The translations under genes were made by a program, and so were the position numbers. Shown here piece by piece: positions 1,290 through 62,284 of a stretch of DNA of 64,000 nucleotides. Under the pieces are notes generated by a model. The model did no database searches. It worked only from the letters and a program-made list of their open reading frames with translations, and was not told the origin of the DNA. Positions within the stretch are counted from its first letter, which is position 1, and each line of letters opens with the position of its first letter. Source of the stretch: Macrostomum lignano (taxonomy: Eukaryota). The stretch is from assembly GCA_002269645.1 (NCBI GenBank), contig NIVC01000056.1, forward strand, positions 310,001 to 374,000. Reading direction: 5' to 3'.

Positions 1290-2088
1290 ATGCCCGCCAG
1301 GCTGCTGTTGGCCGCCGCCTGTCTTCTGGCCGTCTGCCTGCCGGCTGCCGAAGGATTTCGAATTGTCGCACGGGTGAGAGGGCGGTCCCGGGGGCAGAGC
1401 AAGGAGCTTAATGTGCGCTCCCAGCAAACTGAGAAATTTACTCGTAAAGCGAAGTCCCTCCTGAGTAGCTGGGAACCGAATTTCGCAGCCAGGAATTTAT
1501 ATTTGCGTATTGCTGCAGGCAAAGACCAAGTGCCGTCTTGTTGATCTCAAATGTTTGAATAATTTTGAGCAAGTCTCTAGGGAGGTGTCAACTGGGTGCT
1601 CAGCAATTATCTGCACAAATATTGACTCAACTGGGACCAAATGCAGACGCTAGAAACTGATGAACTTTTCACCCCATCAATTTTAGACGCATCACGGAAG
1701 CAAACTCGCCAGCAGCTTCAAAAAACGGCAGGTCTACTTTGATCCCATCGACAACCGGAAGCGACAGGTCTACTTTGATCCCATCGACAACCGGAAGCGG
1801 CAGGTCTACTTTGATCCCATCGACAACCGGAAGCGACAGGTCTATTTTGATCCCATCGACAACCGGAAGCGACAGGTCTATTTTGATCCCATCGACAACC
1901 GGAAGCGACAGGTCTACTTTGATCCCATCGACAACCGGAAGCGGCAGGTCTACTTTGATCCCATCGATAACCGGAAGCGACAGGTCTACTTTGATCCCAT
2001 CGATAACCGGAAACGGCAGGTCTACTTTGATCCCATTGATAACCGGAAACGGCAGGTCTACTTTGATCCCATCGACAACCGGAAGTGA
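1290..2088 (+). CDS. Multi-copy secreted neuropeptide precursor (161 aa; signal peptide + 10x QVYFDPIDN)
   Basis: join(1290..1373,1687..2088). Donor CGG|GTGAGA and acceptor TTTTAG|ACG are both phase 0. Protein: MPARLLLAAACLLAVCLPAAEG-FRIVARTHHGSKLASSF-KKR-(QVYFDPIDNRKR)x9-QVYFDPIDNRK-stop. All differences between the 36-bp units are synonymous except the final CGA/CGG>TGA. Confidence 0.9.
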
Positions 2089-3729: not shown

Positions 3730-4379
3730 CACCCAGCAACATTAAAAAGTGTCCACGTCTGCACAAAAGGCTACACTAGCTGGACGATTAGGGATTGAAA
3801 GGTTTTAACTATGTTTGGGCCATAGACAATCAAAATAAGGCAACAAAGAAAGAACTGCGAAACAAGTCCATGCCCATTTCCACGCTGTGTACGTGTCTAA
3901 AGCACAGTCAGTTACAGGTATACATAGCAACCACGAGCATCCAACAGACCGCTCACTCGTCGAGTCATTCCCGAACAAGGCGCCGCAGAAAGTCTTGTGG
4001 AAGCTGTTGCCACGCGACTGAAATCGCATTGCGCAGCTGGACCATGTTCTGGGGGGATATAGATTGTTGCAACTAATCGTGCGCTTCAGGGAATCCCACA
4101 CGTGCTCAATAGGGTTCATATCCGGTGATCTGGACGGCCAACGCAAAGTGCGCCAATCGGTCATTTGGCGGACTATCGTTGTCACCTGCGTCCAGATGCC
4201 TCCAGTAAACTCCTGTACACTCGTTACTGTAACGCTTTTCCCTGTGACACCAGGTATCGGTCTTTACTTTCCTGCCCTTTTTTTGCTCATTTGTCGATGG
4301 CCCAAAACCAATTGGCGAAACCATCGATCGTGCTTGGACCCTTGGCGCAAGGGTGGGCACTTTTAAATGTTGCTGAGTG
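3730..4379 (-). mobile_element. Tc1/mariner internally deleted element (650 bp)
   Basis: 27-bp terminal inverted repeats CACCCAGCAACATTAAAAAGTGTCCAC (3730-3756) and GTGGGCACTTTTAAATGTTGCTGAGTG (4353-4379), flanked by TA on both sides. The minus-strand remnant WPSRSPDMNPIEHVWDSLKR is the Tc1 transposase motif WPxxSPDLNPIE. Confidence 0.92.
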
Positions 4380-8609: not shown

Positions 8610-21194
<12,585 letters not shown>

Positions 21195-21965: not shown

Positions 21966-22780
21966 TGTCTTATGAGTGACGCATCCTGTCTACAGACAGA
22001 GTGAGGTCCCATACACATGTCAAGTGCATAAGTTACAGTATGTGTACGTAGTTCCTCTTCATGTACTGCACATTAATTTTTAACTGTCCGGAGCACATAT
22101 CCCGTATCATAGGCGGCTGTGCATGTCGCATTCGTACTGGCATGTTCTCTATAATTGTACATGCAGACTTAGCATATGTACACATTTTTAACTGACATTA
22201 ACTCCATAGACTCGTATATGCAGTTCTTCTATGGTTTAACCATGTGAACTTTACAAAGCACCTGACCTGAGATTGGCAGTTTTCAGGGAACCAGGCAATG
22301 ACACAAAAATGCTTATATGCTGTTACGTAACCATACTACACTGCCGTGAACTTGCACATTTTTTGTCTTTAATTCTCTCTTACCTCGCAAATTGCTTTGC
22401 ATTGCTTATAGACAAATCTAGACTTGTATGCAGATAGATATTACACCTGGAAACAGTTAATTAAGCCCTTACTATGATTGTGAAAATAGCGTAGATCGTC
22501 TTAACCTTGAAAAGCAAATTTTTATAAGACCCAGAAGTCTGGAAAATCACTGAGCGTTTGTTCGAGAAACTTGCTGGCCTTTCCCAAAATGGGCTCTGAA
22601 TTTCTGCGAGGCATTGTGCTTTAAATGCTTTCGGTTCTTCCAAAGTAATAATACCCCAAACTCCATCATCTCTGCACACACCAATATCCAAACTGCCCAG
22701 GATCCTCAGACTCACTGTATCAACAGATTTCAAACTCTCCAATTCTCGAACTCCACAATCTCTAAACTCTGTAATCCCTA

Positions 22781-24108
22781 AACTTCCCGATCCCTAAACT
22801 CTCCGATCCCTAAACTCCCCGATCCCTAAACTCTCCGATCCCTAAACTCCCCGATCCCTAAACTTCCCGATCCCTAAACTCTCCGATCCCTAAACTCCCC
22901 GATCCCTAAACTCCCCGATCCCTAAACTCTCCGATCCCTAAACTCCCCGATCCCTAAACTTCCCGATCCCTAAACTCTCCGATCCCTAAACTCTCCGATC
23001 CCTAAACTCCCCGATCCCTAAACTCCCCGATCCCTAAACTCTCCGATCCCTAAACTCCCCGATCCCTAAACTCTCCGATCCCTAAACTCTCCGATCCCTA
23101 AATTCCACGATCCCTAAACTCCCCGATCCCTAAATTCCCCAATCACTAAACTCCCCGATCCCTAAATTCCCCAATCACTAAACTCCCCAATCACTAAACT
23201 CCCCAATCCCTAAACTCCCCGATCCCTAAACTCCCCAATCACTAAACTCCCCGATTCCTAAACTCCCCAATCCCTAAATTCCACGATCCCTAAACTCCCC
23301 GATCCCTAAATTTCCCGATCCCTAAACTCCCCAATCCCTAAACTCCCCAATCACTAAACTCCCCAATCCCTAAATTCCACGATCCCTAAACTCCCCGATC
23401 CCTAAACTCCCAAATCCCTAAACTCCCCAATCCCTAAACTCCCAAATCCCTAAACTCCCCAATCCCTAAACTCCCCGATCCCTAAACTCCCAAATCCCTA
23501 AACTCCCCAATTCCCAAACTCCCCAATCCCTAAACTCCCAAATCCCTAAACTCCCCAATTCCTAAACTCCCCAATTCCTAAACTCCCCAATCCCTAAACT
23601 CCCCGATCCCTAAACTCCCAAATCCCTAAACTCCCCAATCCCTAAACTCCCCAATCCCTAAACTCCCAAATCCCTAAACTCCCCAATTCCTAAACTCCCC
23701 AATCCCTAAACTCCCCGATCCCTAAACTCCCCGATCCCTAAACTCCCCAATTCCTAAACTCCCCAATCCCTAAACTCCCCATCCCTAAACTCCCAAATCC
23801 CTAAACTCCCCAATTCCTAAACTCCCCAATTCCTAAACTCCCCAATCCCTAAACTCCCCGATCCCTAAACTCCCAAATCCCTAAACTCCCCAATTCCCAA
23901 ACTCCCCAATCCCTAAACTCCCAAATCCCTAAACTCCCCAATTCCTAAACTCCCCAATCCCTAAACTCCCCAATCCCTAAACTCCCCGATCCCTAAACTC
24001 CCAAATCCCTAAACTCCCCAATTCCCAAACTCCCCAATCCCTAAACTCCCAAATCCCTAAACTCCCCAATTCCTAAACTCCCCAATCCCTAAACTCCCCG
24101 ATCCCTAA
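22781..24108. repeat. 16-bp minisatellite (GATCCCTAAACTCCCC)n, about 80 copies
   Basis: Direct reading; each unit contains CCCTAAA. Confidence 0.97.
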
Positions 24109-25362
24109 AACCCACTAAGCATTAGCACTATATACATGCAGAAAAATAAGAGAGACAAGCAAAATCCAAAAGCTTAAATGGCATTTTATCCAGACCATTA
24201 GAAAACAGAACTAAGCTTTGCAGATGATAATAATAACAATAATAATTGATAAATTGAGTAATTTTTATCTTAGCCGCATAGTCAAAGGCATTGAGACAGA
24301 TTTGAATAGCAGACAACAGGCGGGCTAAATATAATTTAGGGTTAAGCGGGACAGACAGGACACACGAACAGCCGCAGAGAGAAGGAAAAACGGGCAGACA
24401 GCGGTGTGCTGCCCAGGCCTGACCACACTGCTCTAGAAGGACACCCAAGGATAATAATGAGCAGATGCTAGCAAAATGACGGAGCTTCAGGAGCAGCATG
24501 GCATCAGTACTACTAGTTAGTAGTAGGCTAGTCAGTAAAGGGTCCATCGAGATGAACTGGGCAGAACTGAGCTGGGACAAACTTACACAGTAGTAAAATA
24601 ATAAGACTTGAATTAGACAATATGATGCAGCATTAGCAGGTTGGCACTCAGAGACAAATCCATATACTAAAATCTAAACTAAACACGGGGCCTAATTAAT
24701 TTACAGTAGAATATTTGTTTAAATAAATGTAGGCGAATGAAAATTCCGGAATTGTTTTTTTGTTCAAATTCAGTACTTGGAACACAAAAATGGATACCGG
24801 GCCTTTTAAATAAGTCTCCCAATTCTTATGCCTCAGTTAGGGTTGTTAAAATTGAAAAAAGTTATTATTGATACTACGAGTAGTTAACACGATAACTAAT
24901 GCCAATTATTATTAATTAAAAACAGGACCAACCACCTTCAGTTTCGGATGGGCATTGAGTGCATTGGTTACTACAGAAAACACAAGGAACTCACAAACAC
25001 GAGGAAGTGTAGAAAAAAAACGCAGTTTATTGATACTACTAACTAACCAGAGTTGGTCAGTAGAGCAGACGAGAATTGTAACTATTTTATATTATATAAT
25101 TTTTATTGCCCATTTAAGATGCATGGCAAACGAGAGGAGCACATTTAACAGGACAGACTATAATGAAAGCAGAGACGCACAGAGGAAAATGAAAAGAGGA
25201 ACAAAGACGATTAACATCGGGGTTTTGAAGCCGGAAACAATGTAAAAGAAAAAAGAAACAGACTGCTTCGGGCCGCATCAACAAAAAACAATTCTAAGAG
25301 TTGGTGACTCGATATTAATTATTCGAATTTCGCATTCATAAGCCTCGAGTTTTTCACGTTTA

Positions 25363-28300
25363 TCAACGATTCCTGGCCGGGCGCTTGCCGCGCACCACTG
25401 ACGGCTTCTGGCGCAGGGTGCCCACCTTGTTGCTAAGGGTCTTCCTAGTATTGAAGACTCGAACCCGGGACTTTGGCTGCTCGATCTTATTGCGATTTGG
25501 CGGCTGCTTCACCTTGTAGATCCGGACCATCCAGTGCTCGGAGGTGAACGCCTCCTCCAGGTGCTTCAATGTGAAGTGCTTGCGGCCGATCTCCGCATTC
25601 CGAGTTCGATCGAATCCTGGCGGAGTTCGAAAATCCGTCTGCATCTCGCCGAACCGATAATAGCTCATCTTGTACATCAGCGAGTTTAGCATGGTCTGCG
25701 AGGCCGAGCCGTCAATCTTGTACTCGCCCTGCGGAGTGAAATAGTCGCTCTCTTTGATGTCGCGCGGGTGCTCGCCCTCGGCGATGCGGACCATCCACAG
25801 GAACTTGTTGATGTCGTCGCCGGAGTAGCCGATGACGCCGCCGAATATGATGAGCACGTAGTCAACGTCCAGCATGCGCATGATCTTGTAGGCCTCTGTC
25901 TCGTTGCTGGCCATGGCCTTGCCGACCAGGGCGATGTGGCTGTTGTTCCACGTGTTGTTGTCAACCAGGGTGGTGCGGTTGGCCATGCCGGCGATCTGGT
26001 AGCCGTAGTCCCACCTGGGCGGTTGGGGGGGGGGCTTTTACATGGGGAATCAGTGGGGCTGGGAGGGCGGCTCTTTTATATGGGGAATCAGTGGGGCTGG
26101 GAGGGCGGCTCTTTTACATGGGGAATCAGTGGGGCTGGGAGGGCGGCTCTTTTATAATATGGGGAATCAGTGGGGCTGGGAGGGCGGCTGGGGAATCAGT
26201 GGGGCTTTTTATATGGGGAATCAGTGGGGCTGGGAGGGCGGCTCTTTCATGGGAAATGCTTGGTCCAAGACAGGTAATTGTCAAACGCCTCACCAGCTCA
26301 TAACCCGGGCCCTGTCGTGCGTGTTCCTCCGCAGCCAATAATAAGCTTCCCTGAAGTCGTCAAGAATCACCCGCGATCCGTCCTGATTGTAGCTGGCCAG
26401 CACAATGCTCGGGGACGAATAGGCATTGGAGGTGACCCAGGTGCAGTGCATGCAGAACAGCAGAATCACTATGACAAACACCAGCAGCACCACCGACTTC
26501 ACGTTCAAGCCGAGCACTTCGTCGTCGCGTCGATCGCCCTGAAATAGTTTAGCGACACGGGCCACTGCATCAATAAGGCGGGCTGGGGTAGGCAGTTTAC
26601 AGTACTGGCTTTGACATATGCTTATATTCTTAATCTCTGTCTCTCAGCCTTAAAACTTAAGCAGAGTTGGGCGTTCAAGATACAGCCACACCTGGCCACA
26701 CCTGGCGTATTGCTATCGGGGCGTTTAAAGTGAGAAAATTGTTAGTGTGTTTATAAAACGACTTACAGGGTATTAAGGAAGCGTTATTATCGGAGTCTTT
26801 AAGGAGCGGTTATCAGGGTGTTTAGGGAGCGGTTATCGGGGTGTTTAGGGAGCGGTTATCAGGGTGTTTAGGGAGCGGTTATCGGAGTCTTTAGAGAGCG
26901 GTTATCGGGGTGTTTAGGGAGCGGTTATCGGAGTCTTTAGGGAGCGGTTACCGGGGTATTTAGGGACTGTTTATCCAAGTGTTTAGGAAGCGCTTATCGG
27001 GGTGGATAACAAAGCCGTTTTACGGGGTGTTTAGCAAGCGATCCTCGAGAATCGAGCTGTTTCAACTATTAAGAAACTTCCCCAAACCGGAGCTTGGTGA
27101 GCATCGCTATACAGACACGGCATGACACGGCTAAATGAACGCACCTGCTGTCCCGTGGCGCTGACAGCCGAGGAGCCGCTGTCTCCCCTCTGCTTAATCT
27201 TGGGCTTGTCGTACAGATTGCGCGGCTCAGACGAAGCCGAACCGGCGCTAGAAGAGGCGCCGGCGGCCTGTTGGCGCCGTTTATTACCAGAGGCGCCAGA
27301 GCCGGCGCCAACAGCCGAAGAAGAATCGCCAGCGGCGCCAGCAGCAGCGCCGGGCTCGACCTCGTCTTTCAAGTAGATGTCAAACAGGCGCGAGAAGGCG
27401 ATGGCGGCCAGCACGCAGACGCAGGGGGTCAGCGTGAGCATCAGGCGGACCATCACGCCGGCGAAGTAGGAGGCGAACACGGCGTACAGGACGATGAAGA
27501 CGCGCTCATCGGTGAGATCCCGGATGCAGAACCAGGCGCCGGCAGGGTAGACGCAGACAAGGATGTGCAAGTCGAAGAAGAAGCTCACCCAGGGAGTTGG
27601 CTGGTGCTCGGAGACGCTGGCGATGATGGGGATGTGGATCTTGGCGTAGCCGGTGTCCCACAGGGAGTAGAACCGGCCGCTCCAGGGCGCCACGTAGCCC
27701 AGGTAGGTGAGGCCCACGACTGAGGCGAACACCAGGCCCGCCGCGGCCACCTGGCGTATGTTTGGGCGTTGGGGCGATTCTTGTAGCTGAGGCTAAGGGG
27801 CGATTCTTGAAGCTGAGGGGCGATTCTTGTAACTGAGGCTAAAGGGCGATTCTTGAAGCTTAGGGGCGATTCTTGAAGCTGAGGCTGAGGGGCGGCTCTT
27901 GTACCTGTGGCTAAGGGTCGATTCTTGTAACCGAGGCTGAAGGGCGATTCTTGTAACTGTGGCTAAGGGGCGATTCTTGTAACCGAGGCTAAGGGGCAAT
28001 TCTTGTAACTGAGGCTGAGGGGCGATTCTTGTAATGAGGCTGAGGGGCGATTCTTGTAACTGAGGCTGAGGGGCGATTCTTGTAGCTGAGGCTGAGGGGC
28101 GACTCTTGTAGCTGAGGCTAAAGGGCGATTCTTGAAGCTGAGGCTGAGGGGCGGTTCTTGTAACCGAGGCTAAAAGGCAATTCTTGTAACTGAGGCTGAG
28201 GGGCGATTCTTGTAATGAGGCTGAGGGGCAATTCTTGTAACTGAGGCTGAGGGGCGATTCTTGAAGCTGAGGCTGAGGGGCAGTTCTTGTAACCGAGGCT

Positions 28301-37551: not shown

Positions 37552-40500
37552 ATGAAGGCGCCTAAAAAGCAGTCAAAGCAGCAACAGAAGAAGAACAAGC
37601 AGTTGAAAACAAAGAAGCAGTCGGATGAAAGCCAGGAAAATGGGCACAGTGCAGAGGTAGCTGCCGAGGACACTGAGAAGCCTGAGGCTGAGCAGCAGCC
37701 TGGCGACCGCAGCCTGGAGCAGTTCGACCTTCCAGACTCTGTGCTGCATCAGTTGCGAGAGCGCGGCATTACCGGCCTGTTTCCAGTGCAGCAGCAGTCG
37801 TTTGATCACGTGATGTCCGGTCACGATCTCATTGTGCAGTCGCGCACCGGCACAGGAAAGACGCTGGCCTTCGGGCTGCCCATTGTCCTTCAGCTGCTGA
37901 AGCAGCAGGACAAGCGGGCTGGCAAAGCCGGGGTGAGAAAATTTTTATTGAGCTCTCTGGCTTCTTTATCGACAGCAACGCTTGACAGCTCAAGAACTTC
38001 TTGTCAGCTCAATCTCACATCGTTAAGAATGTCTTGTCAGAACTTTCAATCTCACATCGTTGAGAATGTTTTGTCAGCTCAATCTCACATTGTCAAGAAC
38101 TTCTTGTCAGCACAATCTCACATCGTTGAGAACTTCTTGTCAGCTCAATCTCACATCGTTGAGAATGTTTTGTCAGTTCAATCTCACATCGTCAAGAACT
38201 TCTTGTCAGCTCAATCTCACATCGTCAAGAACTTCTTGTCAGCTCAATCTCACATCGTTAAGAACTTCTTGTCAGCTCAATCTCACATCGTCAAGAACTT
38301 CTTGTCAGCTCAATCTCACATCGTTAAGAACTTCTTGTCAGCTCAATCTCACATCGTTAAGAACTTCTTGTCAGCTCAATCTCACATCGTCAAGAACTTC
38401 TTGTCAGCACAATCTCACATCGTCAAGAACTTTTTGTCAGCTCAATCTCACATTGTTAACCTCCTTACTTTGCCATTCAGACGCCAGCCAAGCGGCGGTC
38501 CCCGAATCGAGCCCCGCGCGTTCTCATCCTGGCGCCGACCCGCGAGCTGGCCAAGCAGATCTCTGACGATCTGACGGCCACCTGCCCGCCGGACAGCGGC
38601 CTGGTAGTGCTGCCGGTCTACGGTGGCGTGCCGTACGAGAAGCACCGCTCGGCCCTGGCCGCCGGGTCGGACATTGTGGTTGGCACGCCCGGCCGCGTAC
38701 AGGACCTGGTCGAGCAGGGCTGCCTGCGGATGGACAGAATCCGCCGGGTGGTGCTGGATGAAGTCGATAGGATGCTGGATATGGGATTCCGCGACTCGGT
38801 TGATCAGCTGATCAAGCGGCTGTACAGCGGCGGCGAGGAAGATGCTGGCCAAGAGGAGAAGAAGAGGCCGCAGACTCTGCTGTTCTCGGCTACGCTGCCC
38901 TCCTGGGTGAGTTAGTCCTGAGTTCGAATCTTTCTCTGATTCTTATTAGTACAATTTCGGATTCTCGATCTCAAATTCTTAAGATCCTAACCTTGGAGAT
39001 CTCTAATCCAATATATATGATTCCTTAAATCCCAAGTATGATATCCCAGATCCCAATTCCACTATCCCAGATCTCGTTTGCCTAGATCCCAAATCTGGTA
39101 CCCCAGATCCCAGTTCCTAGATCCCAAATCTGATATCCCAGATCCCAGATCTCATTTGCCTGGATCCCAAATCTGATATCCCAGATCCCAGATCTCATTT
39201 GCCTGGATCCCAAATCTGATATCCCAGATCCCAGATCTCATTTGCCTGGATCCCAAATCTGATATCCCAGATCCCAGATCTCATTTGCCTGGATCCCAAA
39301 TCTGATATCCCATATCCCAGATCTCATTTGCCTAGTTCCCAAATCTGCGATCCGAGATCCCAGTTCCTAGATCCCAAATCTGATATCCCAGATCTCATTT
39401 GCCTGCATCCCAAAGCTGCGATCCGAGATCCCAGTTCCTAGATCCCAAATCTGATATCCCATATCCCAGATCTCACTTGCCTAGTTCCCAAATCTGCGAT
39501 CCGAGATCCTAGTTCCTAGATCCCAAATCTGATATCCCATATCCCAGATCTCATTTGCCTAGTTCCCAAAGCTGCGATCCGAGATCCCAAGTGCATAAAT
39601 CAAACTAGCAAATGCATAAATCCCCATGCAGGTCGAAGAGACCTCTGCCAAGTACCTGGACCCGGACAACCTGGTCCGCCTGGACCTGGTCACCGGTGAC
39701 GGCCAGGGCCGGGCCGCCCAGACCGTCGAGCACCTCGCCATCCTGTCGCCGTTCGCCTCGCGCAGCGCGGCCATCGCCGACGTGATCCGAGTGAGGTGCG
39801 GCGGCCCGCAGGCCCGCTGCATCGTGTTCTGCGAGCGCAAGCGTGACGCCGACGAGCTGGCCTCGCACGCGGCGATGTCCGGCGACTGTCACGTCCTGCA
39901 CGGCGACATTCCGCAGGACAAGCGCGAATTGGTGCTGCAAAAATTTCGCGACGGCAAATACCGAGTGCTGGTGACCACCGATGTGGCCGCCCGCGGCCTG
40001 GACATCCCGCATGTTGACCTGGTGATCCTGTGCCACCCGCCCAAGGACACCGAGTCCTACATCCACCGGGCTGGCAGGACCGGCCGAGCCGGCAGGTCCG
40101 GCGCCGCCGTCACCTTCTACACCGTCAAGGAGGAGACCGAACTGAAGAGGGTCGAACGGCAGGCTGGCATCAGGTGCGAATTCTGCAGATGGGGATTTCT
40201 GGGATTGGGATATAATTGAATCAGGAGCAGCTAATCACGCCTTCCCCTTTCCCCGACATCCCGCCCAGATTCAAGCGCATCGGCGCGCCCACAACCGCGG
40301 ATTTGGTCAAAGCGGCCGGCCGGCACTCGCTGGAGCAGCTGCAGGCGGTGCAGGATCCCACCATCCAGCTGCTGGCCGAGGAGGCCTCCGAGCTCATCGC
40401 CGCCATGGGCGCCGAGCGAGCCGTGGCTGCCGCACTGGCGCTGCTCAGCGGCAAAACTGAAATTGTTGGCCGCAGCCTCCTGTCTGCCAGGGAGGGCTTC

Positions 40501-42587: not shown

Positions 42588-45500
42588 ATGAAGGCTCGCT
42601 TCACCACTCTGGACATTGTGGCCGTCGTGGCCGAGATCTCACAGAGCTGCATTGGTCTGCGAGTGTCCAACGTCTACGACATCAATAATAAGACCTACTT
42701 GATTCGGCTGAGCAAGCCCGATCACAAGGTGAGAGCGATGGTCGTGATTTTGGTTTTCGAGCATGTTTAATTTAAATTTGGAATTATTTTCTCTTTTAGA
42801 AATTACCCCTATGTATAAAGAACATTGTTGCTTTCAGGAATGTCGCCTTATAACCTTACAGAAGTCGCCTTCGAATGTTTAGGAATCGCGATCTTCAGAA
42901 ATCGCCCTCTAATCTTTAAGGATCGCCTTCTTATCTTTAGGAATCGCCCTTTGATATTTAGGAATCGCCCTTTGATATTTAGGAATCGCCCTTTGATCTT
43001 TAGGAATCGCCCTTTGATCTCTAGGAATCGCCCTTTAATCTTTAGTAATCGCCTTTGAATCTTTAGGAATCGCCTTTGAATCTTTAGGAATCGCCTTTGA
43101 ATCTTTAGAAATCGCCCTCTAATCTTTAGGAATCGCCCTCTAATCTTTAGGAGTCGCCCTCTTAATATTTAGGAACCGCCCTTTAATCTTTGGGAATCGC
43201 CTTTAATCTTTAGGAATCGCCTCGAAATCTTTATTAATCGCCCTCTAATCTTTAAGAATCGCCCTGTGATCTTTAGAAATCGCCCACTTATCTTTAGAAA
43301 TCGCCCTCTTATCTTTAGGAATCGCCTTCGACTCTTTGGAATCGCCCTCTTATCTTTTGGAATCGCCCTATTATCTTTTGGAATCGCCCTCTTATCTTTA
43401 GGAGCCGCCCTCTAATCTTTAGGAATCGCCTTTTTATCTTTAGGAATCGCCTTTTTATCTTTAGGAATCGCCCTCTAATCTTTATAAATCGCCTTCCCTC
43501 ACGCATGCCAACCGTGACTCGCCTGTCCCCAGGTGACCCTGCTATTCGAGTCGGGCATCCGGCTGCACATCACGGACTTTGACTGGCCGAAGAACATCAC
43601 GCCCAGCGGTTTCTCAATGAAGCTGCGCAAGCACATCAAGAACAAGCGGCTGGAGCAGATCCAGCTGGTTGGCATCGATCGCATTGTTCGGCTGCAGTTC
43701 GGCACGGGCGAATGGACTTTCCACCTCATTGTGGAGCTGTACGATAAGGGCAACGCCCTGCTCACTGATCACCAGTTCACCATCGTGCACCTGCTCAGGC
43801 CGAGGACAGACGCGGCAGACCAGACCAAGATCGTCACCAGCGAGACCTACCAGCTGGACAAGGCCAGGCAGGCCTGCGACTGGAGCCTGGCCGCAATCGC
43901 CCCGGTTTGCTCTGCAGCCGCCACTCAGAAAGGCCAGCTGGCCAGGTCCCTCACCGGCCTGTTCCCCTACGGAGGTCCCCTGCTCGATCACTGCCTCCGC
44001 GTCGCGTCCGGCCAGTCGCTGAAGTCGCTGGAGTCGCAGCTGACGCCCGACTCAGTGGAAGCCGCGGCCGCTGCCGCCTTGGCCGCCTTCGAGCTGGGCG
44101 AGACGATTGTGGCCAGCCTGCGCGACCGGCCTGACGACTCTGTGCGAGCCTGCGTCACCACCAAGCCGCGCGAGGTCTCCTCCGTAGCGACGGGTTCCGC
44201 TGCGTCTGGCACAGCGCCTGCGGCGGCATCGGTAGATCCGTACAGCGGACTGGACTTTCTGGAGTTTCACCCTATGGAGCTGGTGCAGACTGAGGGCAAG
44301 GACAAGATCCGCTTTCACAGCTTCAATAAGGTGGGCTGGAGCGCGCCTTGCTCAGATTCATATGCTATGCCCCATACCCCAATACCATCCTAAAGTCCCA
44401 TAACCCAATACCATCCTAAAGTCCCATACCCCAATACCATCCCCGAACCCCATACCCCAGTACCATCCTAAAGTCCCATAACCCAATACCATCCTAAAGT
44501 CCCATACCCCAATACCATCCCCGAATCCCATACCCCAATACCATCCCCGAGCCCCATACCCCAATACCATCCCCGAACCCCATACCCCAGTACCATCCTA
44601 AAGTCCCATACCCCAATACCATCCCCGAATCCCATACCCCAATACCATCCCCGAGCCCCATACCCCAATACCATCCCCGAACCCCATACCCCAATACCAT
44701 CCCCGAATCCCATACCCCAATACCATCCCCGAGCCCCATACCCCAATACCATCCCCGAACCCCATACCCCAATACCATCCCCGAATCCCATACCCCAATC
44801 TTCTTCTTCTCTTATATTTTATTTTTATTTTTATTTTTATTTTTATATTTATATATATATATATATATTTTTATTTTTATTTTATTATATTATTTTATTT
44901 TTATTTTTTATACACTAATTTTGCGCTGTATTCGTGCGTGCGTGCAATTGATTTTTTCGAGAATGGCTCAACCGATTCTCTTCAAACTTGCACCATTCGA
45001 TCAGAAATTTTCCTGGGATGGTGCATGCATCTTGGCTAAGAAATTGATTAATATTAAAGGGATTAAATATTCGAAAAACATGATTTTTTGCAAAGGTCAA
45101 GCAGCTCTTTCGACCTGAAATGCATTGTAAGAATGCTAGAGAAAAACCTGACTGACTGAATTTCAATTCTGATAAAGATTGCATCACAGCAAGTTGAAAA
45201 CAGTGCCAAAGAAATGCACACACGACTTGATTTAAATTGCGTAACCATACTGCTAACTTAAATTGAGACTGATACTGGCTGACTGAGAAATTGATTATGT
45301 CATAACTTTTTACTCCAACCGATTTGCTATAAGAATTGAATTATAAGGGCCACAATTCATGTTCTCCAATCGACAAGAGATAGCCTAGATGCGAACAGAC
45401 TGGAATGCTAATGTAGCGACCTGGGTTCGAAACTTAGTAGTGCAAAATAATTTTTTTATTTAAACATCTTAAAAACAAAATGCTAAACATAAAAGAAGCA

Positions 45501-48500
45501 CAACAAAAGTGGCACCATTTCAAACATTAAAGGCCACCATGTCAAACATATATGTGATTCCATGTCGAACATTAAAGAGCCACCATGTCGAACATTAAAG
45601 AGCCACCATGTCGAACATTAAAAAGCCATCATTACAGACATTAAGGTGCCACCAGGTCAAACATTAAAGAGCCACCATGTCGAACATAAAAGAGCCACTA
45701 TGTCAAACATCAACGAGTCACCATGTCAAGCGTATACATGACTCCATTTCAGACATTAAAGTGCCACCATGCCAAACATTAAAGAGCCACCATGTCAAGC
45801 GTATAAGTGACTCCATGTCAGACATTAAAGAGCCATCATTGCAGACATTAAAATGCCACCAGGTCAAACATTAAAAAGCCACCATGTCAAATATAAAAGA
45901 GCCACCATGTCAAACATTAAAGAGCCACCATGTCAAACACAAAACAGCTACCATGTCAAACATAAATGGGGTGCCTACTATCTTGGAGTGCTTGCTATCT
46001 GGAGATGCGTGCTATCTGGGGGTGCTTGCTATCTGGGGGTGCTTGCTATCTGGGGGTGCTTGCTATCTGGGGGTGCTTGCTATCTGGGGTGCTTGCTATC
46101 TGGGGGTGCTTGCTATCTGGGGGTGCTTGCTATTAGGTGGATGCTTGCTATCTGGGGTGCCTGCTATCTTGGAGTGCTTGCTATCTGGAGATGCGTGCTA
46201 TCTGGGGTTGCTTGCTATCTGGGGGGGGGATGCTTGCTATCTTGGGGGTTCTAGCTATCTGGGGGTGCTTGCTATTAGGTGGATGCTTGCTATCTGGGGT
46301 GCCTGCTATCTTGGAGTGCTTGCTATTAGGTGGATGCTTGCTATCTGGGGGTGCTTGCTATCTGGGGGGTACTTGCTATCTAAGGGTGCTTGCTATCTTG
46401 GGGTGCTTGCTATTAGGTGGATGCTTGCTATCTGGGGTGCTTGCTATCTGGAGATGCTTGCTATCTGGGGGTGCTTGCTATCTGGGGGGTTGCTTGCTGT
46501 CCTGGGATGTTTTCTTTTTGCATTGCACTTCATTTGAGCAGTTTTTCTATTGTCTATGTGAAGGCTTTTTTTGGCCGTCTTTTTGATACTTGTAGAGAGC
46601 CAGAGATTCTATCTAGATGCCCCCCATCGGGGGGGGGCGAAGATTGCTAGTACCATCCTAAATTCCCATACCCCAATACCATCCACGAACCCCATACCCC
46701 AATACCATCCCAAAGTCCCATACCCCAATACCATCCCCGAATCCCATACCCCCAATACCATCCCCGAATCCCATACCCCAATACCATCCCCGAATCCCAT
46801 ACCCCCAATACCATCCCCGAACCCCATACCCCAATACCATCCTTGAATCCCATACCCCAATACCATCCCAGAACCCCATACCCCAAAACCATCCCCGAAT
46901 CCCATACCCCAATACCATCCCCGAATCCCATACCCCCAATACCATCCCCGAACCCCATACCCCAATACCATCCCCGAACCCCATACCCCAATACCATCCC
47001 CGAATTCCATACCCCAATACCATCCCCGAATCCCATACCCCAATACCATTCCCGAATCCCATACCCCCAATACCATCCCCGAACCCCATACCCCAATACC
47101 ATCCCCGAATCCCATACCCCAATACCATCCCCGAATCCCATACCCCAATACCATCCCAGAACCCCATACCCCAATACCATCCCCGAATCCCATACCCCAA
47201 TACCATCCCCGAATCCCATATCCTCACAGCCTACTTCATTCCGCAACCCGGATATATTCCCAGCGTGAGCTACAAAATATCATTACTGCGATCCCGAACC
47301 CAGGCTGTAGACGAATTTTTCCTCAAAATGGAGAGCCAACGCCTGGACCAGAAGGCCCTGCAGCAGGAGAAGGCGGCCCTGAAGAAGCTGGACAACATCA
47401 AGCAGGACCACGAGAAACGGCTCGCCGAGCTGGCCGAAGCGCAGATCACCGACAGGGAGAAGGGCGAGCTGCTGCAGCTGAACCTGGCCGCGGTGGAGAA
47501 GGCCCTGCTGGTCATTAACAGCGCCCTGGCCAACCAGCTGGACTGGGAGGCCGTGGCTGAACTCGTGTCCACTGCCCGCGCCCAGGGCGACCCCGTGGCG
47601 GCCTTGATCCAGGTGATACTGGGCACTCTGGATTTTTAGTTGCTGGGCCAGCCTCCCAGATCCTCAGTTTCTGGGCCAGCCTCCCAGATCCTCAGTTGCT
47701 GGGCCAGCCTCCCAGATCCTCAGTTGCTGGGCCAGCCTCCCAGATCCTCAGTTGCTGTGCCAGCCTCCCAGATTCTCATTTGCTGGGCCAGCCTCCCAGA
47801 TCCTTAGTTGCTAGGCCAGCCTCCCAGATTCTCAGTTGCTGGGCCCACCAGGCTCCCAGATCCTTAGTTGCTAGGCCAGCCTCCCAGATCCTCAGTTGCT
47901 AGGCCAGCCTCCCAGATTCTCATTTGCTGGGCCAGCCTTCCAGATCCTCAGTTGCTAGGCCAGCCTCCCAGATTCTCAGTTGCTGGGCCCACCAGCCTCC
48001 CAGATCCTCAGTTGCTGTGCCAGCCTCCCAGATTCTCATTTGCTGGGCCAGCCTCCCAGATCCTTAGCTGCTAGGCCAGCCTCCCAGATTCTCAGTTGCT
48101 GGGCCCTACCAGCCTCCCTCAGTTGCTGGGTCGCTGCCAGCCTCCCAGATCCCCATTTACTCAGCCGGTACGTTCCTGTCCATTTAAAGTAGACCTTGCT
48201 CTAAATAAAGCCGCGAATTTATGCAGGAGCTCCGCCTTGACCGCAACGCAATTGTGTTGCGCCTATCGAATCCGTTCGACCCCGAGCACCGGAGTCACAA
48301 CATTGAGATCGACCTGGCCACTAGCGCCTTCGGCAACGTCAAGCGGCTGTTCGACCAGAAGAAGCAGTTCGCAGCCAAAGAGGAGAAGACTAAGCTGGCG
48401 TCGGAGAAGGCGCTCAAAGCTGCCGATAAGAAGACGCATGAGATGCTTAAGGAGGCGCAGAAGGTGGGATTTTGTGGGTTTTCTGTGGGATTCTGTGGGA

Positions 48501-49812
48501 TTTGTGTTGGATTTGTGAGGATTTAGTGTGGGATTCTGTTGGATTTGTGTTGGTTTAGTGTGGGATTTGTGAGGGTATGGTGTGGGATTCTGTGGGATTT
48601 GTGAGGGTTTAGTGTGGGATTGTGTGGTGTGGGACTCCACACGCCATTCCGCAACCCCACAAACATGGCAGGTGAGCAGCATCGCCAAAGTCCGCAAGCC
48701 GCTCTGGTTTGAGAAATTCTACTGGTTCGTCAGCAGCGAGAACTACGTTGTGATTGGCGGCCGCGACCAGCAGCAGAACGAGTTGATCGTGAAGCGGCAC
48801 CTCAAGGCCGGGGACCTGTACGTGCACGCGGACCTGCACGGAGCCAGCAGCGTGGTCATCAAGAACCCCACTGGAGAGCCGGTGCCGCCAAAGACTCTGA
48901 ATGAGGCCGGCCAGATGGCTGTGGTGTACTCCAGCGCCTGGGCCGCCAAGGTGGTCAGCAACGCCTGGTGGGTGCACCATCACCAGGTGTCGAAGGTGGC
49001 TCCCACAGGCGAGTACCTGACCAGCGGCAGCTTCATGATCCGCGGCAAGAAGAACTTCCTGCCCAGCGTGCAGCTCACCTTCGGCTTCGGCTTCCTGTTT
49101 CGCATCGACGAGGAGTCGGTGCCGAATCACCGGGGCGAGCGCGCCGCGGCGCCCTACTCGGCCGCTGACCTTGTCGGCGACGAGTCTGACGGAGCGGCCG
49201 CGGAGGCCGGCCTGCCGACTCTGCCGGAGGTGCTGGAGTTCGGCGAGGATGACGAGCAGCCGGCAGACGGCACCAACGACGTGGAGATTCGCTACGAGTA
49301 CGGCGCCGACGGTCGATTTGAGGTCGCCCGGCAGGCCTCGACGATGTCCGCCGCGGACAGCCACGCCGCCGAAGATGCCAGTGGGGCCGGCTCGCTTCGC
49401 CGCCGGGTTGACAGCGTGGCCTCCGTCACGTCTTCAACCAGCGGCAGGCGCAAGATGGCCGCTCACGAGAGGCGGGCGGCGCGCAGGCAGCTGAAGGCCC
49501 AGCAGCAGGCCAAAGATGGCACTGACTCATCAGAGTCGGCCGCCAAACTCGAAGCTGACGAATACATGCAGAGCCTGCAGGTGGAGGATCTGGAGGCCGA
49601 CGCCGGAGACACCGACAGCGACAGCGAAGATGACGAGCCCGGACTCGCATTGAAAGCAGAGCAGCCTGATAATGGGGGAGAGTCTGGACAGAGCTCAGAT
49701 GATGATGCCGACACTGTCCAGCCTCTGGTGGCGGCTTCAGCAAAGCAAGAGGAAGCCTCAGCGGTGCCAGTCGAAACTCTGCAAACTTCTGCGCCTGGAA
49801 ACAATCAGAAAA

Positions 49813-49858
<46 letters not shown>

Positions 49859-50498
49859 ACAGCTGGTGAAGCGGGGTCAGCGCTCCAAGCTGAAAAAGAT
49901 GCAGGCCAAATACAAGGACCAGGACGAAGAGGACAGGCGGCTGGCTATGAGCCTGCTGCAGAGCGGCGGCAAGAAGCAGCAGCAACAGCAGCAAAAGCAG
50001 CAGCAGCAGCAGAAGCAGCAATCAAAGCAGAAGCAAAAGCAACAGCAGCAGCAGAAGCAAAGACAGCAGCAGCAGCAGCAGCCGCCCCAGCCTCCAGCGG
50101 CTGTCGCAGTCGCCGCCGAGGATCATCTGTTCGACGACGCAGACGACGACGAAGAGGCAGGCGCCGCCTCAGGCGCTGGCGGTCCCGGCGCCCAGGACCG
50201 CGAATTGCTGGAGTCCCTGACTGGCCAGCCGCTGCCAGACGACATTCTGTTGTTCGCCATACCCGTGTGCGCACCCATCGGCACCCTGGCCTCTTACAAG
50301 TTCAAAGCCAAGCTGACCCCGGGCACAACCAAGCGAGGTAGAGCCGTCAAGACCGCCCTGGCCGTGTTCACCTCCGACAAGTCGTGCAGCCGCGCGGAGC
50401 GCGACCTCATGCGCGCAGTGAAGGACAATGACCTGTGCTGCAACCTGCCCGGCAAAGTCAAGCTGTCTCTGGCTGGAGTGACTAAGCAGAAAAAATGA
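42588..50498 (+). CDS. NEMF: Ribosome quality control factor NEMF/Rqc2, 1103 aa
   Basis: join(42588..42728,43533..44330,47304..47612,48227..48463,48672..50498) = 3312 nt. Motifs: MKARFTTLDI...GLRVSNVYDINNKTYL, LLFESGIRLH, GIDRIV, ELYDKGN, WFEKFYWFVSSENYVVIGGRDQQQNE, YVHADLHGASS, KYKDQDEEDR, PVCAP..KFKAKLTPG. Poly-Gln runs in the last exon. Confidence 0.96.
42880..43495. repeat. 21-bp minisatellite TTTAGGAATCGCCCTTTAATC, NEMF intron 1
   Basis: Direct reading. Confidence 0.94.
44370..47220. repeat. 26-bp minisatellite CCATACCCCAATACCATCCCCGAA(T/C)C, NEMF intron 2, split by a Helitron
   Basis: The same unit occurs at 44370-44798 and 46651-47220. Confidence 0.95.
44799..46650 (+). mobile_element. 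Non-autonomous Helitron (1852 bp) carrying internal minisatellites
   Basis: 5' end TC (44799), 3' end CTAG (46647-46650), GC hairpin GCCCCCC-ATC-GGGGGGGGGC at 46619-46638. It sits between A and T of the host unit CCCCAA|TACCATCC with no target-site duplication. Internal arrays: 23-mer at about 45530-45960 and 17-mer at about 45965-46500. Confidence 0.85.
47640..48150. repeat. 28-bp minisatellite GTTGCTGGGCCAGCCTCCCAGATCCTCA, NEMF intron 3
   Basis: Direct reading. Confidence 0.94.
48465..48635. repeat. GT-rich GTGGGATT low-complexity repeat, NEMF intron 4
   Basis: Direct reading. Confidence 0.85.
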
Positions 50499-50733: not shown

Positions 50734-50983
50734 CGACAGCTCAGCCGCAGCTATTGCGCGGCGCATCTGAAGGCTGCGTACGGCTGTTCAGTCCAAGGGC
50801 TGGGGGGGGGGTCGCCACACACGCCCTCAATTACCCCAGCTAATGCTGGCACCCATTTGAACTGAAGCAATTCAAAGTTAAGTGTCTTGCTCAAGGACAC
50901 AAATTGTTCCGAGTGGGATCGGGAATCGAACCCCCGATCTTCCATTCGTGAGTCAGACGCTCTAACCACTGGGCTACAACCCC
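50734..50983 (-). mobile_element. tRNA-derived SINE with CORE-like domain
   Basis: On the minus strand: A box TAGCCCAGTGG (50966-50976), B box GTTCGATTCC (50922-50931), then TGTGTCCTTGAGCAAGACACTTAAC (50877-50901), resembling the CORE/MIR motif TGTGACCTTGGGCAAGTCACTTAAC. The 3' end is approximate. Confidence 0.8.
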
Positions 50984-57524: not shown

Positions 57525-58600
57525 GCATATTAGTAGCATTTGGCGCCGAATTTTAGTAGAATTCAGCGTCAAGTATTTCTTGCATTTAGCGCCAAGAATC
57601 GGTAGTATTTAGCTCCAAATATTAGTAGCATTTAGCGCCAAATATTAGTAGCATTTAGCGCTAAGAATCGGTAGTATTTAGCTCCAAATATTAGTAGCAT
57701 TTAGCGCCAAATATTAGTAGCATTTAGCGCCAAATATTAGTAGCATTTAGCGCCAAATATTAGTAGCATTTAGCGCCAATAATTAGTAGCATTTAGCGCC
57801 AAATATTAGTAGCATTTAGCGCCAATAATTAGTAGCATTTAGCTCCAAATATAAGTAGCATTTAGCGCTAAATATTAGTAGCATTTAGCTTCAAATATTA
57901 GTAGCATTTAGCGCCACGAATTAGTTGCATTTAACTCCAAACATTAGTAGCATTTAGCGCCAAAATATTAGTAGAATTTAGCGCCAAATATTAGTAGCAT
58001 TTAGCTTCAAATATTAGTAGCATTTAGCGCCACGAATTAGTTGCATTTAACTCCAAACATTAGTAGCATTTAGCTCCAAATATAAGTAGCATTTAGCGCT
58101 AAATATTAGTAGCATTTAGCTTCAAATATTAGTAGCATTTAGCGCCACGAATTAGTTGCATTTAACTCCAAACATTAGTAGCATTTAGCGCCAAAATATT
58201 AGTAGAATTTAGCGCCAAATATTAGTAGCATTTAGCTTCAAATATTAGTAGCATTTAGCGCCACGAATTAGTTGCATTTAACTCCAAACATTAGTAGCAT
58301 TTAGCGCCAAAATATTAGTAGAATTTAGCGCCAAATATTAGTAGCATTTAGTGACAAAAATTAGTATCATTTAGCGCCAAGACTTAGTAGCATTTGGCGC
58401 CAAGAGTTAGTTGCATTTAGCGCCAAGACTTAGTAGCATTTGGCGCCAAGAGTTAGTTGCATTTAGCGCCAAGAGTTAGTTGCATTTAGCGCCAAGAGTT
58501 AGTTGCATTTTGCGCCAAGAGTTAGTTGCATTTTGCGCCAAGAGTTAGTTGCATTTTGCGCCAAGAGTTAGTTGCATTTTGCGCCAAGAGTTAGTTGCAT
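57525..58600. repeat. 23-bp minisatellite ATTTAGCGCCAAATATTAGTAGC with higher-order variants
   Basis: Direct reading. Confidence 0.96.
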
Positions 58601-59808: not shown

Positions 59809-60861
59809 TCAGCAAAGACTCGACCTGCCGTTAGCTCCGCTCTGTCGCAGCCAGACAAAATTGCTGCCACCAAATTTGTCAGACGGATTTTGCTGCGGCT
59901 GCATCGACGGAGGCTGCAGCAGCAGCTCCAAGTTCTCGGTGGGCTGCTCCGACAAGTCCACAACCTGTAGCTGCCGCTGCTGTCGCTGCTGCTTGGGCTC
60001 GCCCGAATTGGAAGGCCGGGTCCTCTCAGCTACCAGCCGGTAAAGCAACTCGATGCATTCGACAAAGAATGCCAGAGTCAGGCCGATGTACATGGAGCAG
60101 AGGCCGCCGATGCGGCTGAACAGAGCGTTGACGGTGAGGACGATCTTCTCCTGCCTCACCAGAGTGTTGTTGGCGCGCCGCTTCACCATCACGTAGGTGA
60201 ATCGCTCGTCGAAATGAAAATTGGTGTTGTTGGCCAGCAGCGCCGGGTCCGTGATGTTCCTCATGCGCAGGTAGTCTTTGACGCGACGCAAACCCCGTTT
60301 TAAATTTTCGGGAGTATCCAGCAGCAGGTTCAGCTTCATCAAGTAGTCGCTCCATCGCTCCGACACCTCCTTGATCCAGTGCAGCATCCAGTGGGTGTCG
60401 CGCCACTTCGTGACCGAGAGCTCCTTGCGGTAACTGAGCTCGGTGCACCTGGGCAGGCAGTCGGTCGCCTCGAACTGTTGCCGAATCCTTCGCTGATCGA
60501 TGCTCTTGGCGCACCTCAGCCTGCTGAACAGTTTGTCGTCGATGAAGCCGCAGTAGGGATGGCTGGCGTTTGCCTGCGTCACCAGGGGCAGCTCGACGTA
60601 CAGACAGCCGCAGGCGCTGAGAAAGGCCTCCTGCACCTTGGTGTTGAGGCACAGCTCCTGGTCGTAGTTGTACATCTGGCCGTGATCGGCGAAACGTCGT
60701 CGACGAATCTCGGCGTCGTCCAGGCAAAGACTGCGCGGTGTGTTGGCGCGGACGAAGCGCTCGGTCTGGTACTTGATCTCGTTCATCTTGCCCGGCTCCG
60801 TCTGGACACCCTGCCGCAGCATCTGCGAGCGCAAATGGTAGATTGCGTAGTAGTTAAGGGA
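59809..60861 (-). CDS. DEG/ENaC (ASIC/FaNaC superfamily) channel, last exon (350 aa); N-terminal exons not found in the window
   Basis: Acceptor TATTTCAG|TCC at 60862, phase 0. Cys-rich thumb (ELCLN..CGC...YC...RC...CLPRCTELSY) and TM2 LFSRIGGLCSMYIGLTLAFFVECIEL. A candidate upstream exon end CAG|GTGCAG lies at 63985. Confidence 0.88.
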   Translation of the reverse strand, partial: SLNYYAIYHLRSQMLRQGVQTEPGKMNEIKYQTERFVRANTPRSLCLDDAEIRRRRFADHGQMYNYDQELCLNTKVQEAFLSACGCLYVELPLVTQANASHPYCGFIDDKLFSRLRCAKSIDQRRIRQQFEATDCLPRCTELSYRKELSVTKWRDTHWMLHWIKEVSERWSDYLMKLNLLLDTPENLKRGLRRVKDYLRMRNITDPALLANNTNFHFDERFTYVMVKRRANNTLVRQEKIVLTVNALFSRIGGLCSMYIGLTLAFFVECIELLYRLVAERTRPSNSGEPKQQRQQRQLQVVDLSEQPTENLELLLQPPSMQPQQNPSDKFGGSNFVWLRQSGANGRSSLC

Positions 60862-61247
60862 CTGAAATAATGGCCAAACACGAGTGCGCGTAGCAACGTC
60901 ATTGTTTAGCAATTTGACAATCATTATTCGCATTTTTATGCAGAAAAATACATTACTACAAACAATGCATTGTTTTTTTGTTTCAGCGGTCGCAGCACGT
61001 GACAACGATTTGTCTATGGCTCGCGCCTACCGGCGCTCGCCAGACATTCGTTGTCACGCACTGGGACCGCTGATTATTTATCCATTACTTCACAGTTTTT
61101 TAATTGGCTGTTTTGAGAGTTATTTTACCCATAGACGACTGAGATGTGTGTCTTAGTTTGACTATAGACACACTGTGATGAGTGCTGATTTCGTTTGCGT
61201 TTTGCAAGAAATCAGGACAGCGGGTAGTGCGAGTGAAAGCTACTTGT

Positions 61248-61548
61248 CTTGTCAAACAACTATGGCTGGTGCATCTCGTCAAACAACTATGGCTGGTGCA
61301 TCTTGTCAAACAACTATGGCTGGTGCATCTTGTCAAACAACCATGGCTGGTGCATCTTGTCAAACAACTATGGCGGTGCATCTCGTCAAACAACTATGGC
61401 TGGTGCATCTCGTCAAACAACTATGGCGGTGCATCTCGTCAAACAACTATGGCTGGTGCATCTCGTCAAACAACTATGGCTGGCGCATCTCGTCAAACAA
61501 CTTTGGCTGGTGCATCTTGTCAAACAACTATGGCTGGTGCATCTCGTC
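61248..61548. repeat. 27-bp minisatellite CGTCAAACAACTATGGCTGGTGCATCT
   Basis: Direct reading; about 11 copies, some 26 bp. Confidence 0.94.
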
Positions 61549-62284
61549 AAACAGCCCCGCTTATTATTTGGAAAAATCTTCTTGTCGACGACTGAACGAA
61601 CCGGGCGACCTATGCTTCAGTGGAGGTGACACAGGAGATGCGGGTGAAGCATGGTAAGCATAATATGTCAACATTGTAAGTAAATTAGTGGCTATACTAA
61701 TGGCCATAGAGAAACTGTGAATTTTTTAAAATGTCCATTAATCTGCAGGTCGGATGGATTCGGAACGCGCAGTTCGCCTCTTCGAGAGCTGCCACTTCAA
61801 GAATTGCACGTTTCAGTTTTAATGAGCAACTTCTGATGAACAGTCTATGACTACTGTGTTGTTTTTGTGCTTAATGTGCGCGTTTTCCATGGATTGTTAG
61901 CTAAAATGTCTTGACTATCCTTATTTTCAATGTATTCCATGCCATGTAGACTGTTTGCGAACATTATTCCCTTATGTCAGTTAATAAGTGCATAGTAGTT
62001 AACTAATCGTCTATGGTTCAAACGCCTGCTAAAGCTGAACTAATGGCCAGTTGAGTTTGTCATTGTCAAAAATCAGCCTTTAGGATAATGCAATCGTCTA
62101 TGGTTAAACCATGAGCACATTTATTTATTTTTTCACTTAAACTTCAGGATAATGATTTCAAACTCGGGATAATGGACACCTATTTTTAGAACAAAACAGC
62201 AAACACCAACAACAAAAGATTAGCGCTATGGAAAGTTAATTGTGCAGTATCAATATGGCGCAATTGTCATAGTGCCGAAGACCA

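Follow-up and report, generated by a model that had tools for sequence, protein, structure and literature searches.

A two-exon Macrostomum lignano gene that probably encodes a secreted prohormone with ten copies of a YFDPI-type peptide

The closest described systems to the gene analysed here are flatworm prohormones that release short peptides with an F-D-P-I core. NPP-26 of Schistosoma mansoni and S. japonicum, which is conserved with planarian SPP-15 (Collins et al. 2010, PMC2953531, supplements and Table 3), gives NFDPILF, SYFDPIIY, SYFDPILF and EHFDPIIY, as well as SYFDPIAF and TYFDPIAF (PMC2953531). Planarian SPP-15 itself comprises eight copies of FDPIQFamide together with FDPIMFamide, the former having been detected by mass spectrometry (MS), and for planarian SPP-16 both QFDPIMY and pQFDPIMY were found by MS (KR.pQFDPIMY.KR), with a free C-terminus (PMC2953531). 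The S. mansoni NPP-26 peptides were seen as free acids in liquid chromatography–tandem MS of cercariae (PMC9495596). We have analysed a 64,000-nucleotide stretch of the Macrostomum lignano genome (assembly GCA_002269645.1, contig NIVC01000056.1, positions 310,001 to 374,000 of the forward strand; the window, numbered from its first letter). We judge it likely that positions 1290–2088 of the window form a two-exon gene for a secreted-peptide prohormone, carrying ten copies of QVYFDPIDN, and that this gene is a divergent paralogue within the flatworm YFDPI group. Its parts are listed below.

1119–1174, + strand: possible elements of a core promoter, two CCAAT boxes (1119, 1143) and one TATAAA (1169), by motif scan
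1290–1373, + strand: coding part of exon 1, from the start codon to the start of the pro-region, translated as MPARLLLAAACLLAVCLPAAEGFRIVAR
1374–1686, + strand: phase-0 intron of 313 nucleotides, GTGAGA...TTTTAG, with the same junction as in the public models A0A1I8HWB0 and A0A1I8I4A1
1687–1728, + strand: 5' part of exon 2, with the remaining pro-region residues (THHGSKLASSF) and the first processing site, KKR (translation)
1729–2085, + strand: ten 36-bp units, each QVYFDPIDN followed by RKR, or by RK in the last (Tandem Repeats Finder (TRF), translation)
2086–2088, + strand: TGA stop, made out of the unit's CGA (Arg) codon by a C to T change in column 34 of the last unit only

The two-exon structure proposed in a first-pass annotation, in which 1290–1373 is spliced in phase 0 to 1687–2088, is borne out by translation. 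GTGAGA lies directly 3' of exon 1, and the letters just before 1687 are ...CATCAATTTTAG, ending in TTTTAG. From 1687, exon 2 opens with THHGSKLASSFKKR and continues with nine repeats of QVYFDPIDNRKR, a final QVYFDPIDNRK and the TGA, so that the spliced coding sequence of 486 nucleotides specifies 161 amino acids. The length of the intron is not a multiple of three, and exon 1 read without splicing meets a stop after 84 codons, off the frame of the array; the signal peptide can therefore be linked to the array only by splicing. The N-terminus of the precursor consists of MPAR, LLLAAACLLAVCL and PAAEG, followed by the pro-region residues FRIVAR, the last encoded by exon 1. Its features are an n-region that contains Arg4, a hydrophobic core of 13 residues and A-E-G at –3 to –1; mean Kyte–Doolittle hydropathy is 2.4 over residues 4–19 and falls below 0 past residue 19. 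The small residues A20 and G22 at –3 and –1 suggest that this signal-like peptide would be cut after G22, with a cut after A19 as the alternative.

The array lies in a frame without any ATG, GTG or TTG codon, and the TAG of the splice acceptor is an in-frame stop ahead of it. For these reasons the frame is absent from the mechanical list of open reading frames (ORFs), where the array is represented only by the +1 frame (1739–2092) and the minus strand (1718–2140), and the earlier statement that the ORF track had missed the coding frame was right. Convertase-type sites stand on both sides of every copy: KKR ahead of the first, RKR between copies and RK followed by the stop behind the tenth. Repeated copies bounded in this way by dibasic or tribasic sites are what is expected of a peptide prohormone. 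The formula (QVYFDPIDN-RKR)x10 in the first-pass annotation thus holds for the ten identical peptides and needs amending at the end, since in the tenth unit the stop follows RK directly and takes the place of the third basic residue. A degenerate back-translation of YFDPIDN matched the window ten times, always within the array, where 0.02 matches would be expected by chance.

The variation among the units points to constraint on the encoded peptide. TRF reports 1729–2085 as 9.9 copies of period 36 with 95% matches and 0% indels. The units differ at columns 9, 21, 24, 33 and 36, all of which are third codon positions at which all changes are silent transitions, confirming the earlier claim that unit variation is synonymous only. 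A sixth change is the one at column 34 (CGA to TGA), which is confined to the last unit and makes the stop. The probability that all five variable columns would fall within the 12 third positions of 36 is 0.0021; counting the stop-creating change as well, the probability of at least five of six columns at third positions is 0.010. Read in the remaining open frames of the array, these substitutions do change residues. Seven further arrays of the window whose periods are multiples of three served as controls, and their variable columns were spread over all three phases. Variation that is silent only (P = 0.002), set against unbiased control arrays, is the pattern of purifying selection expected for a peptide prohormone.

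The first-pass annotation had contrasted this array with others in the window that carry indels, which is true of some, but several have 0% indels (17338–18014, 22749–24109 and 57527–58587 among them); the long arrays of this kind have periods of 16, 23 or 26, none divisible by three. An open frame is by itself uninformative: at least one frame is open in each of the arrays at 61247–61553 and 63396–63872 and in the 33-bp array at 37992–38459, and three further frames of the 36-bp array are open as well, so that openness cannot be taken as evidence of coding.

The exon junction is also present in public gene models. A protein search with the precursor returned UniRef A0A1I8HWB0, a 160-residue M. 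lignano protein. By tblastn its residues 1–85 are 100% identical to 1119–1373 and its residues 86–160 to 1687–1911, and it therefore uses exactly the 1373/1687 junction. The junction is the same in A0A1I8I4A1 by tblastn. A0A1I8HWB0 is nevertheless a defective model, being translated from 1119 through the 5' untranslated region (UTR) and stopping after five units. Its UniProt name, 'AMIN domain-containing protein', found no support in a Pfam scan. A0A1I8I4A1 (1002 residues, publicly named 'G_PROTEIN_RECEP_F1_2 domain-containing') falls in the same 90% cluster and is chimeric, with a fragment of a guanylate cyclase and a rhodopsin-type G-protein-coupled receptor (GPCR) joined to this precursor. 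Its precursor part has Ala changed to Ser in the signal region and contains 11 units, one with K for Q; it ends at the same ...DNRK, so the frame is kept and the copy number is changed by a whole unit. This part is therefore a paralogue or allele of the window gene; M. lignano is described as a hidden polyploid (PMC10468722). The two copies differ by one residue in 56 of the translated 5' UTR and by two in about 162 of the coding sequence. The warning that repeat masking would hide such a gene holds in part: the gene is present in UniProt, but only as these two defective models, one 3'-truncated with its 5' UTR translated and the other fused to the guanylate cyclase and GPCR.

In the model of the paralogous locus, the prohormone of A0A1I8I4A1 is immediately preceded, on one and the same strand, by the guanylate-cyclase fragment and the GPCR. 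The nearest solved relatives of this GPCR are the opioid and somatostatin receptors (E about 1e-29). The fusion may come from read-through, from an operon, or from ligand and receptor genes that are neighbours by chance.

To place the peptide, an exhaustive phmmer search was made with the precursor against 1.84 billion representative proteins, which gave 128 matches. Repeated FDPI together with dibasic sites occurred in only three of these, all from flatworms: A0A1I8HWB0, A0A1I8IE52 and the protein numbered P0089, a hypothetical protein of Opisthorchis felineus (TGZ67796.1) that reads ...GDKR-ASHFDPIMF-KR-...-AYFDPIMF. The E-values were 2e-55 for A0A1I8IE52 (P0003) and 7e-5 for P0089, figures that are inflated, and hence unreliable, for a periodic query; many unrelated proteins with 12-residue repeats scored below 1e-10 in the same search. 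Two matches considered as possible relatives were set aside as noise of this kind: P0006, with AFDSIDTTPAAS repeats in a transposon-like protein, and P0021, which has AFDPIDLLRGE without basic sites. Outside the repeats, pairwise alignment found no detectable similarity between the precursor and its relatives. A word-indexed protein search with the precursor recovered only its own cluster, because a single 5-mer is all that the relatives have in common with the precursor. With the tail of A0A1I8IE52 as query against a database of 5.8 billion sequences, the HFDPIMF precursors of Clonorchis sinensis and O. felineus were returned at E = 4.5e-14 and 6e-9.

The units of the window gene and its relatives, aligned on the D-P-I core, are as follows.

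RKR - QVYFDPIDN - RKR: M. lignano, window unit
 KKR - AYFDPINYG - KKR: M. lignano, A0A1I8IE52 tail unit
 KRR - AHFDPIMF - KRR: O. felineus and C. sinensis unit
 KR - SYFDPILF - KR: S. mansoni NPP-26 unit
 KR - QFDPIMY - KR: Schmidtea mediterranea SPP-16 unit

The Y-F-D-P-I core is present in all ten window units and is identical in S. mansoni and S. japonicum NPP-26, in AYFDPIMF of O. felineus and C. sinensis and in AYFDPINYG of M. lignano. Like the window gene as predicted, NPP-26 (Smp_071050) and its liver-fluke orthologues (O. felineus TGZ67796.1 and C. sinensis CLF_106202) are small precursors with a signal peptide and short, non-amidated peptides in tandem. Their peptides are flanked by KR or KRR and consist of [S/A/T/E]-Y/H-F-D-P-I followed by exactly two residues, a core matching that of the window peptide. 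The last two residues are hydrophobic-aromatic in the NPP-26 group (LF, IY, MF, AF), whereas the window peptide ends in Asp-Asn; it also differs in its extra N-terminal Gln-Val, its RKR sites and its ten identical copies, against four to seven variable ones. SPP-15 and SPP-16 have the same F-D-P-I core, and SPP-15 is likewise a run of identical copies. Both differ from the window peptide in having no Tyr before the Phe and in ending in an aromatic residue, and SPP-15 is amidated via a Gly. SPP-16, with its pyroglutamylated N-terminal Gln and free C-terminus demonstrated by MS, provides a precedent for the chemistry predicted here.

Judged by sequence, therefore, the gene would be a divergent member of the flatworm NPP-26/SPP-15/SPP-16 family in which the C-terminus has changed. 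The first-pass annotation had interpreted the locus as a spliced, multi-copy secreted precursor, which we retain, but it missed these closest kin. Its suggestion that the peptide may be undescribed has to be narrowed: the family is known, but its member in M. lignano seems not to have been described. YFDPIDN, FDPIDN and FDPINY occurred in none of the papers that could be searched, although an earlier description may exist, for example in supplements, and searches of the literature for FDPID returned irrelevant matches only.

A0A1I8IE52 provides a further comparison within the species. The public entry is a 2405-residue chimeric model named 'MMS1_N domain-containing protein', in which a prohormone is buried at the C-terminus. 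The last 243 residues read MASRNFSTSPLLLLLLLLLGCTAFA...EKR followed by AYFDPINYG-KKR fifteen times, and this part opens with a signal-like poly-Leu N-terminus; the predicted product is AYFDPINY-amide in 15 copies. Both genes have a 12-residue period, and their units can be aligned with no gap (49% identity), sharing YFDPI and a single Lys in each. They differ in that A0A1I8IE52 keeps a Tyr-Gly, giving an amide, and the window gene is without this Gly. In the ungapped register the RKR of the window unit lies over G-K-K, and its N-terminal Gln over the P1 Arg of A0A1I8IE52. On the simplest reading, the basic triplet and its cleavage site would have moved by one residue in the window gene, with loss of the amidation Gly and gain of the N-terminal Gln. 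A stronger version, in which the window gene is a neofunctionalised paralogue whose site shift did away with both the amidation Gly and the aromatic C-terminus, gave a pyroglutamate N-terminus and produced an acidic ligand with a receptor of its own, perhaps the GPCR upstream in A0A1I8I4A1, strikes us as very unlikely. If true, the peptide and that GPCR would be a linked, possibly co-transcribed ligand–receptor pair.

We next consider what else the locus could be. That the array is an ordinary non-coding minisatellite, with an open frame and an adjoining ATG ORF by chance, gains some plausibility from its surroundings, given that 33% of the window is tandem repeat, that other arrays with a period divisible by three are open in several frames, as are three more frames of this one, and that the 37992–38459 array is in frame with a real helicase exon and yet is probably intronic. 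Against this, frame +0 is the only one in which the variation is silent (P about 0.002–0.01), with no phase bias in the controls, a tribasic site separates each unit from the next, an in-phase splice found in public models links the array to a signal-like exon, and a YFDPI core with dibasic flanks is repeated in precursors of the same phylum; we regard chance as a highly improbable explanation. Hardly more credible is a secreted repetitive protein that is not cut into signals, such as a gland, adhesive or antimicrobial product, or a protein encoded in another frame. Expression of Smed-spp-16 in sub-epidermal cells, and not only in the central nervous system (PMC2953531), would fit an uncut product, as would the weak S. 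mansoni NPP-26 signal in the apical gland (PMC11349301). RKR or KKR is found at every boundary, however, the tenth copy could also be freed by trimming of RK, and the relatives are demonstrably cleaved at such sites. As to other frames, the variation is not silent when read in the +1 or minus-strand frame, and neither of these has a signal peptide joined to it.

A different family assignment is also conceivable, namely to the pedal-peptide/orcokinin family, with the gene as the orthologue in M. lignano of the planarian PPP-1/2 type and not of the NPP-26/SPP-15 type. Arthropod orcokinin is NFDEIDRSGFGFN, with the motif NFDEIDR. The planarian PPP-1 peptides are GAYYDPIGGGLL and RSFYDPIGGGLL, and that of PPP-2 is SYFDKIGNDLL (PMC2953531). 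Pedal peptides and orcokinins are likewise multi-copy and mostly non-amidated, with an N-terminal [F/Y]-D-x-I; Smed-PPP-1 (xxYYDPIGGGLL) and PPP-2 have [YF][YF]D-x-I and are non-amidated, and the F-D-P-I of the window peptide fits the motif x-[F/Y/L]-D-x-[I/L]. Pairwise BLAST even favours PPP-1 (E 5e-14, against 1e-4 for S. mansoni NPP-26), though this is largely an effect of repeat number. On the other side, peptides of this family have 11–15 residues with a conserved C-terminal half (GxxLL, or SGFGF in orcokinin), and the window peptide has nine residues and no such half. The five-residue tail G-x-x-L-L after the Ile of the PPP peptides is kept in the Logan-assembled MLDPIGDSLL, whereas the window peptide has two residues after the Ile, as do NPP-26, SPP-15 and SPP-16. 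The exact pentamer Y-F-D-P-I is common to the window peptide, the NPP-26-type group and A0A1I8IE52. A search seeded with Smed-PPP-1 matched two Logan-assembled proteins and no M. lignano protein, an outcome that favours neither assignment. Orthology with PPP-1/2 is unlikely, if less so than the two previous explanations. The remark in the first-pass annotation that the peptide recalls orcokinin and pedal peptides can stand as a distant lead, the FDxI motif being present, but the YFDPI peptides are closer on the features that can be scored. A deep tie of the YFDPI peptides to the pedal-peptide/orcokinin superfamily is possible.

Several observations count against a two-exon prohormone of the YFDPI group, or limit how far its evidence reaches. 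About 125 of the 128 phmmer matches are periodic-repeat noise without FDPI or dibasic content, and with E-values so inflated the homology rests on a five-residue core, the architecture and the phylum. Two residues do follow the Ile, but they are Asp-Asn, and because the aromatic C-terminal residue of the family is absent we file the gene as a divergent relative and not as a typical member. In a Pfam scan of the precursor no family reached a cut-off. The public models behind the junction may be either transcript-built or ab initio, and the near-identity of the two M. lignano copies throughout means that no constraint can be read from a comparison of the two. The 5' end poses a further difficulty. 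A0A1I8HWB0 begins at 1119, upstream of the TATA, which places the promoter motifs inside the model; an AATAAA at 1121 overlaps the first CCAAT (1119); and both M. lignano paralogue models are fused to upstream genes. The 5' end and promoter are consequently uncertain, and read-through, an operon or spliced-leader trans-splicing is possible there. The TATAAA and two CCAAT boxes do lie 120–170 nucleotides upstream of the ATG, and as a promoter of the prohormone gene this cluster is suggestive but unproven, the + strand of the window containing 25 TATAAA and 133 CCAAT motifs in all.

On the preferred reading of a cleaved prohormone, the signal peptide would direct the 161-residue precursor into the secretory pathway and then be removed. 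A prohormone convertase of the PC2 type would cut after KKR42 and after every RKR, and an enzyme of the carboxypeptidase E type would trim the basic residues, to yield ten QVYFDPIDN peptides, the tenth freed by trimming of RK, and one pro-peptide, (AEG)FRIVARTHHGSKLASSF. A homologue of PC2 (RNA815_2403.2) is expressed in the nervous system of M. lignano; post-embryonic development depends on it, and its knock-down is lethal (PMC4490696). The N-terminal Gln would be expected to cyclise, at least in part, to pyroglutamate, and QVYFDPIDN would not be amidated, because there is no C-terminal Gly. The predicted [M+H]+ is 1093.4837 for the pyroglutamate form and 1110.5102 for the Gln form, and the pro-peptide would be expected at 1914.05 or 2171.15. 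The first-pass prediction of a non-amidated product with pyroglutamate at its N-terminus thus agrees, by analogy, with pQFDPIMY and QFDPIMY of SPP-16 and with the free acids of NPP-26, provided that pyroglutamylation is taken as probably partial. The A0A1I8I4A1 copy would in addition yield one variant, KVYFDPIDN or VYFDPIDN. QVYFDPIDN would presumably act as an extracellular signal on a receptor. The designation 'neuropeptide', and with it a neuronal or secretory site of expression, is putative. Of the relatives, S. mansoni NPP-26 is neuronal, as a unique marker of one miracidium neuron cluster (PMC11349301), and Smed-spp-16 is the one found in sub-epidermal cells.

Elements of this kind are already known, as are the family of peptides and the chemistry of their processing, and no new mechanism is involved. 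The locus adds a delimited prohormone gene, and a predicted peptide with its masses, to the neuropeptide catalogue of M. lignano, a transgenic flatworm model, and corrects two defective public gene models (A0A1I8HWB0 and A0A1I8I4A1). It also illustrates a known hazard, in that genes for multi-copy peptides may escape notice when tandem repeats are masked or ORFs are sought from an ATG, particularly in a genome that is one-third minisatellite. Macrostomorpha are commonly placed as an early-branching rhabditophoran lineage. The YFDPI family, so far known from planarians and flukes, would now reach this group, which suggests that it is old within flatworms.

Downstream of the stop there is no canonical AATAAA within 1 kb by motif scan; the motifs of this type on that side are ATTAAA at 2741 and 2760 and AATAAA at 3109. 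An Rfam scan of the whole window gave no match at the prohormone locus. A 12-bp satellite, ATGAACTCACTC, occupies positions 1–740 in about 63 copies, beginning at the window edge and ending 550 nucleotides upstream of the ATG; any gene that precedes the prohormone in this copy lies beyond the window.

In the window as a whole (1–64000), TRF arrays account for about 33% of the sequence, as some 40 minisatellites with periods of 4–50 bp, many of which sit between or within exons that belong to ordinary genes. Where the period is divisible by three, several arrays are open in multiple frames and have no other signs of coding. The 33-bp array at 37992–38459, with SHIVKNFLSAQ repeats, is in frame with the first exon of a DEAD-box helicase (37552–38574, + strand); since the following exon of the helicase (Pfam DEAD) opens near 38460, the array probably lies in an intron. 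A mild skew towards one phase is seen in its variable columns, with counts of 2, 1 and 5.

Other features of the window are as follows.

3808–4263, – strand: remnant of a Tc1/mariner-like transposase, DDE_3 (Pfam)
10014–11267, + strand: ORF with a weak match to a SUZ12-like Zn domain (Pfam)
25366–27792, – strand: oligosaccharyltransferase STT3 (Pfam)
43518–50495, + strand: NFACT/NEMF, with the N, R_1 and C domains (Pfam)

At 50914–50983 on the – strand, Rfam gives a tRNA match of 34.5 bits (gathering threshold 29) where ARAGORN calls no tRNA, and this segment may be a tRNA-derived repeat or pseudogene. Some members of the DEG/ENaC family are peptide-gated channels, and a long exon of a DEG/ENaC gene (amiloride-sensitive sodium channel, Pfam ASC) lies at 59812–61026 on the – strand, 58 kb from the prohormone.

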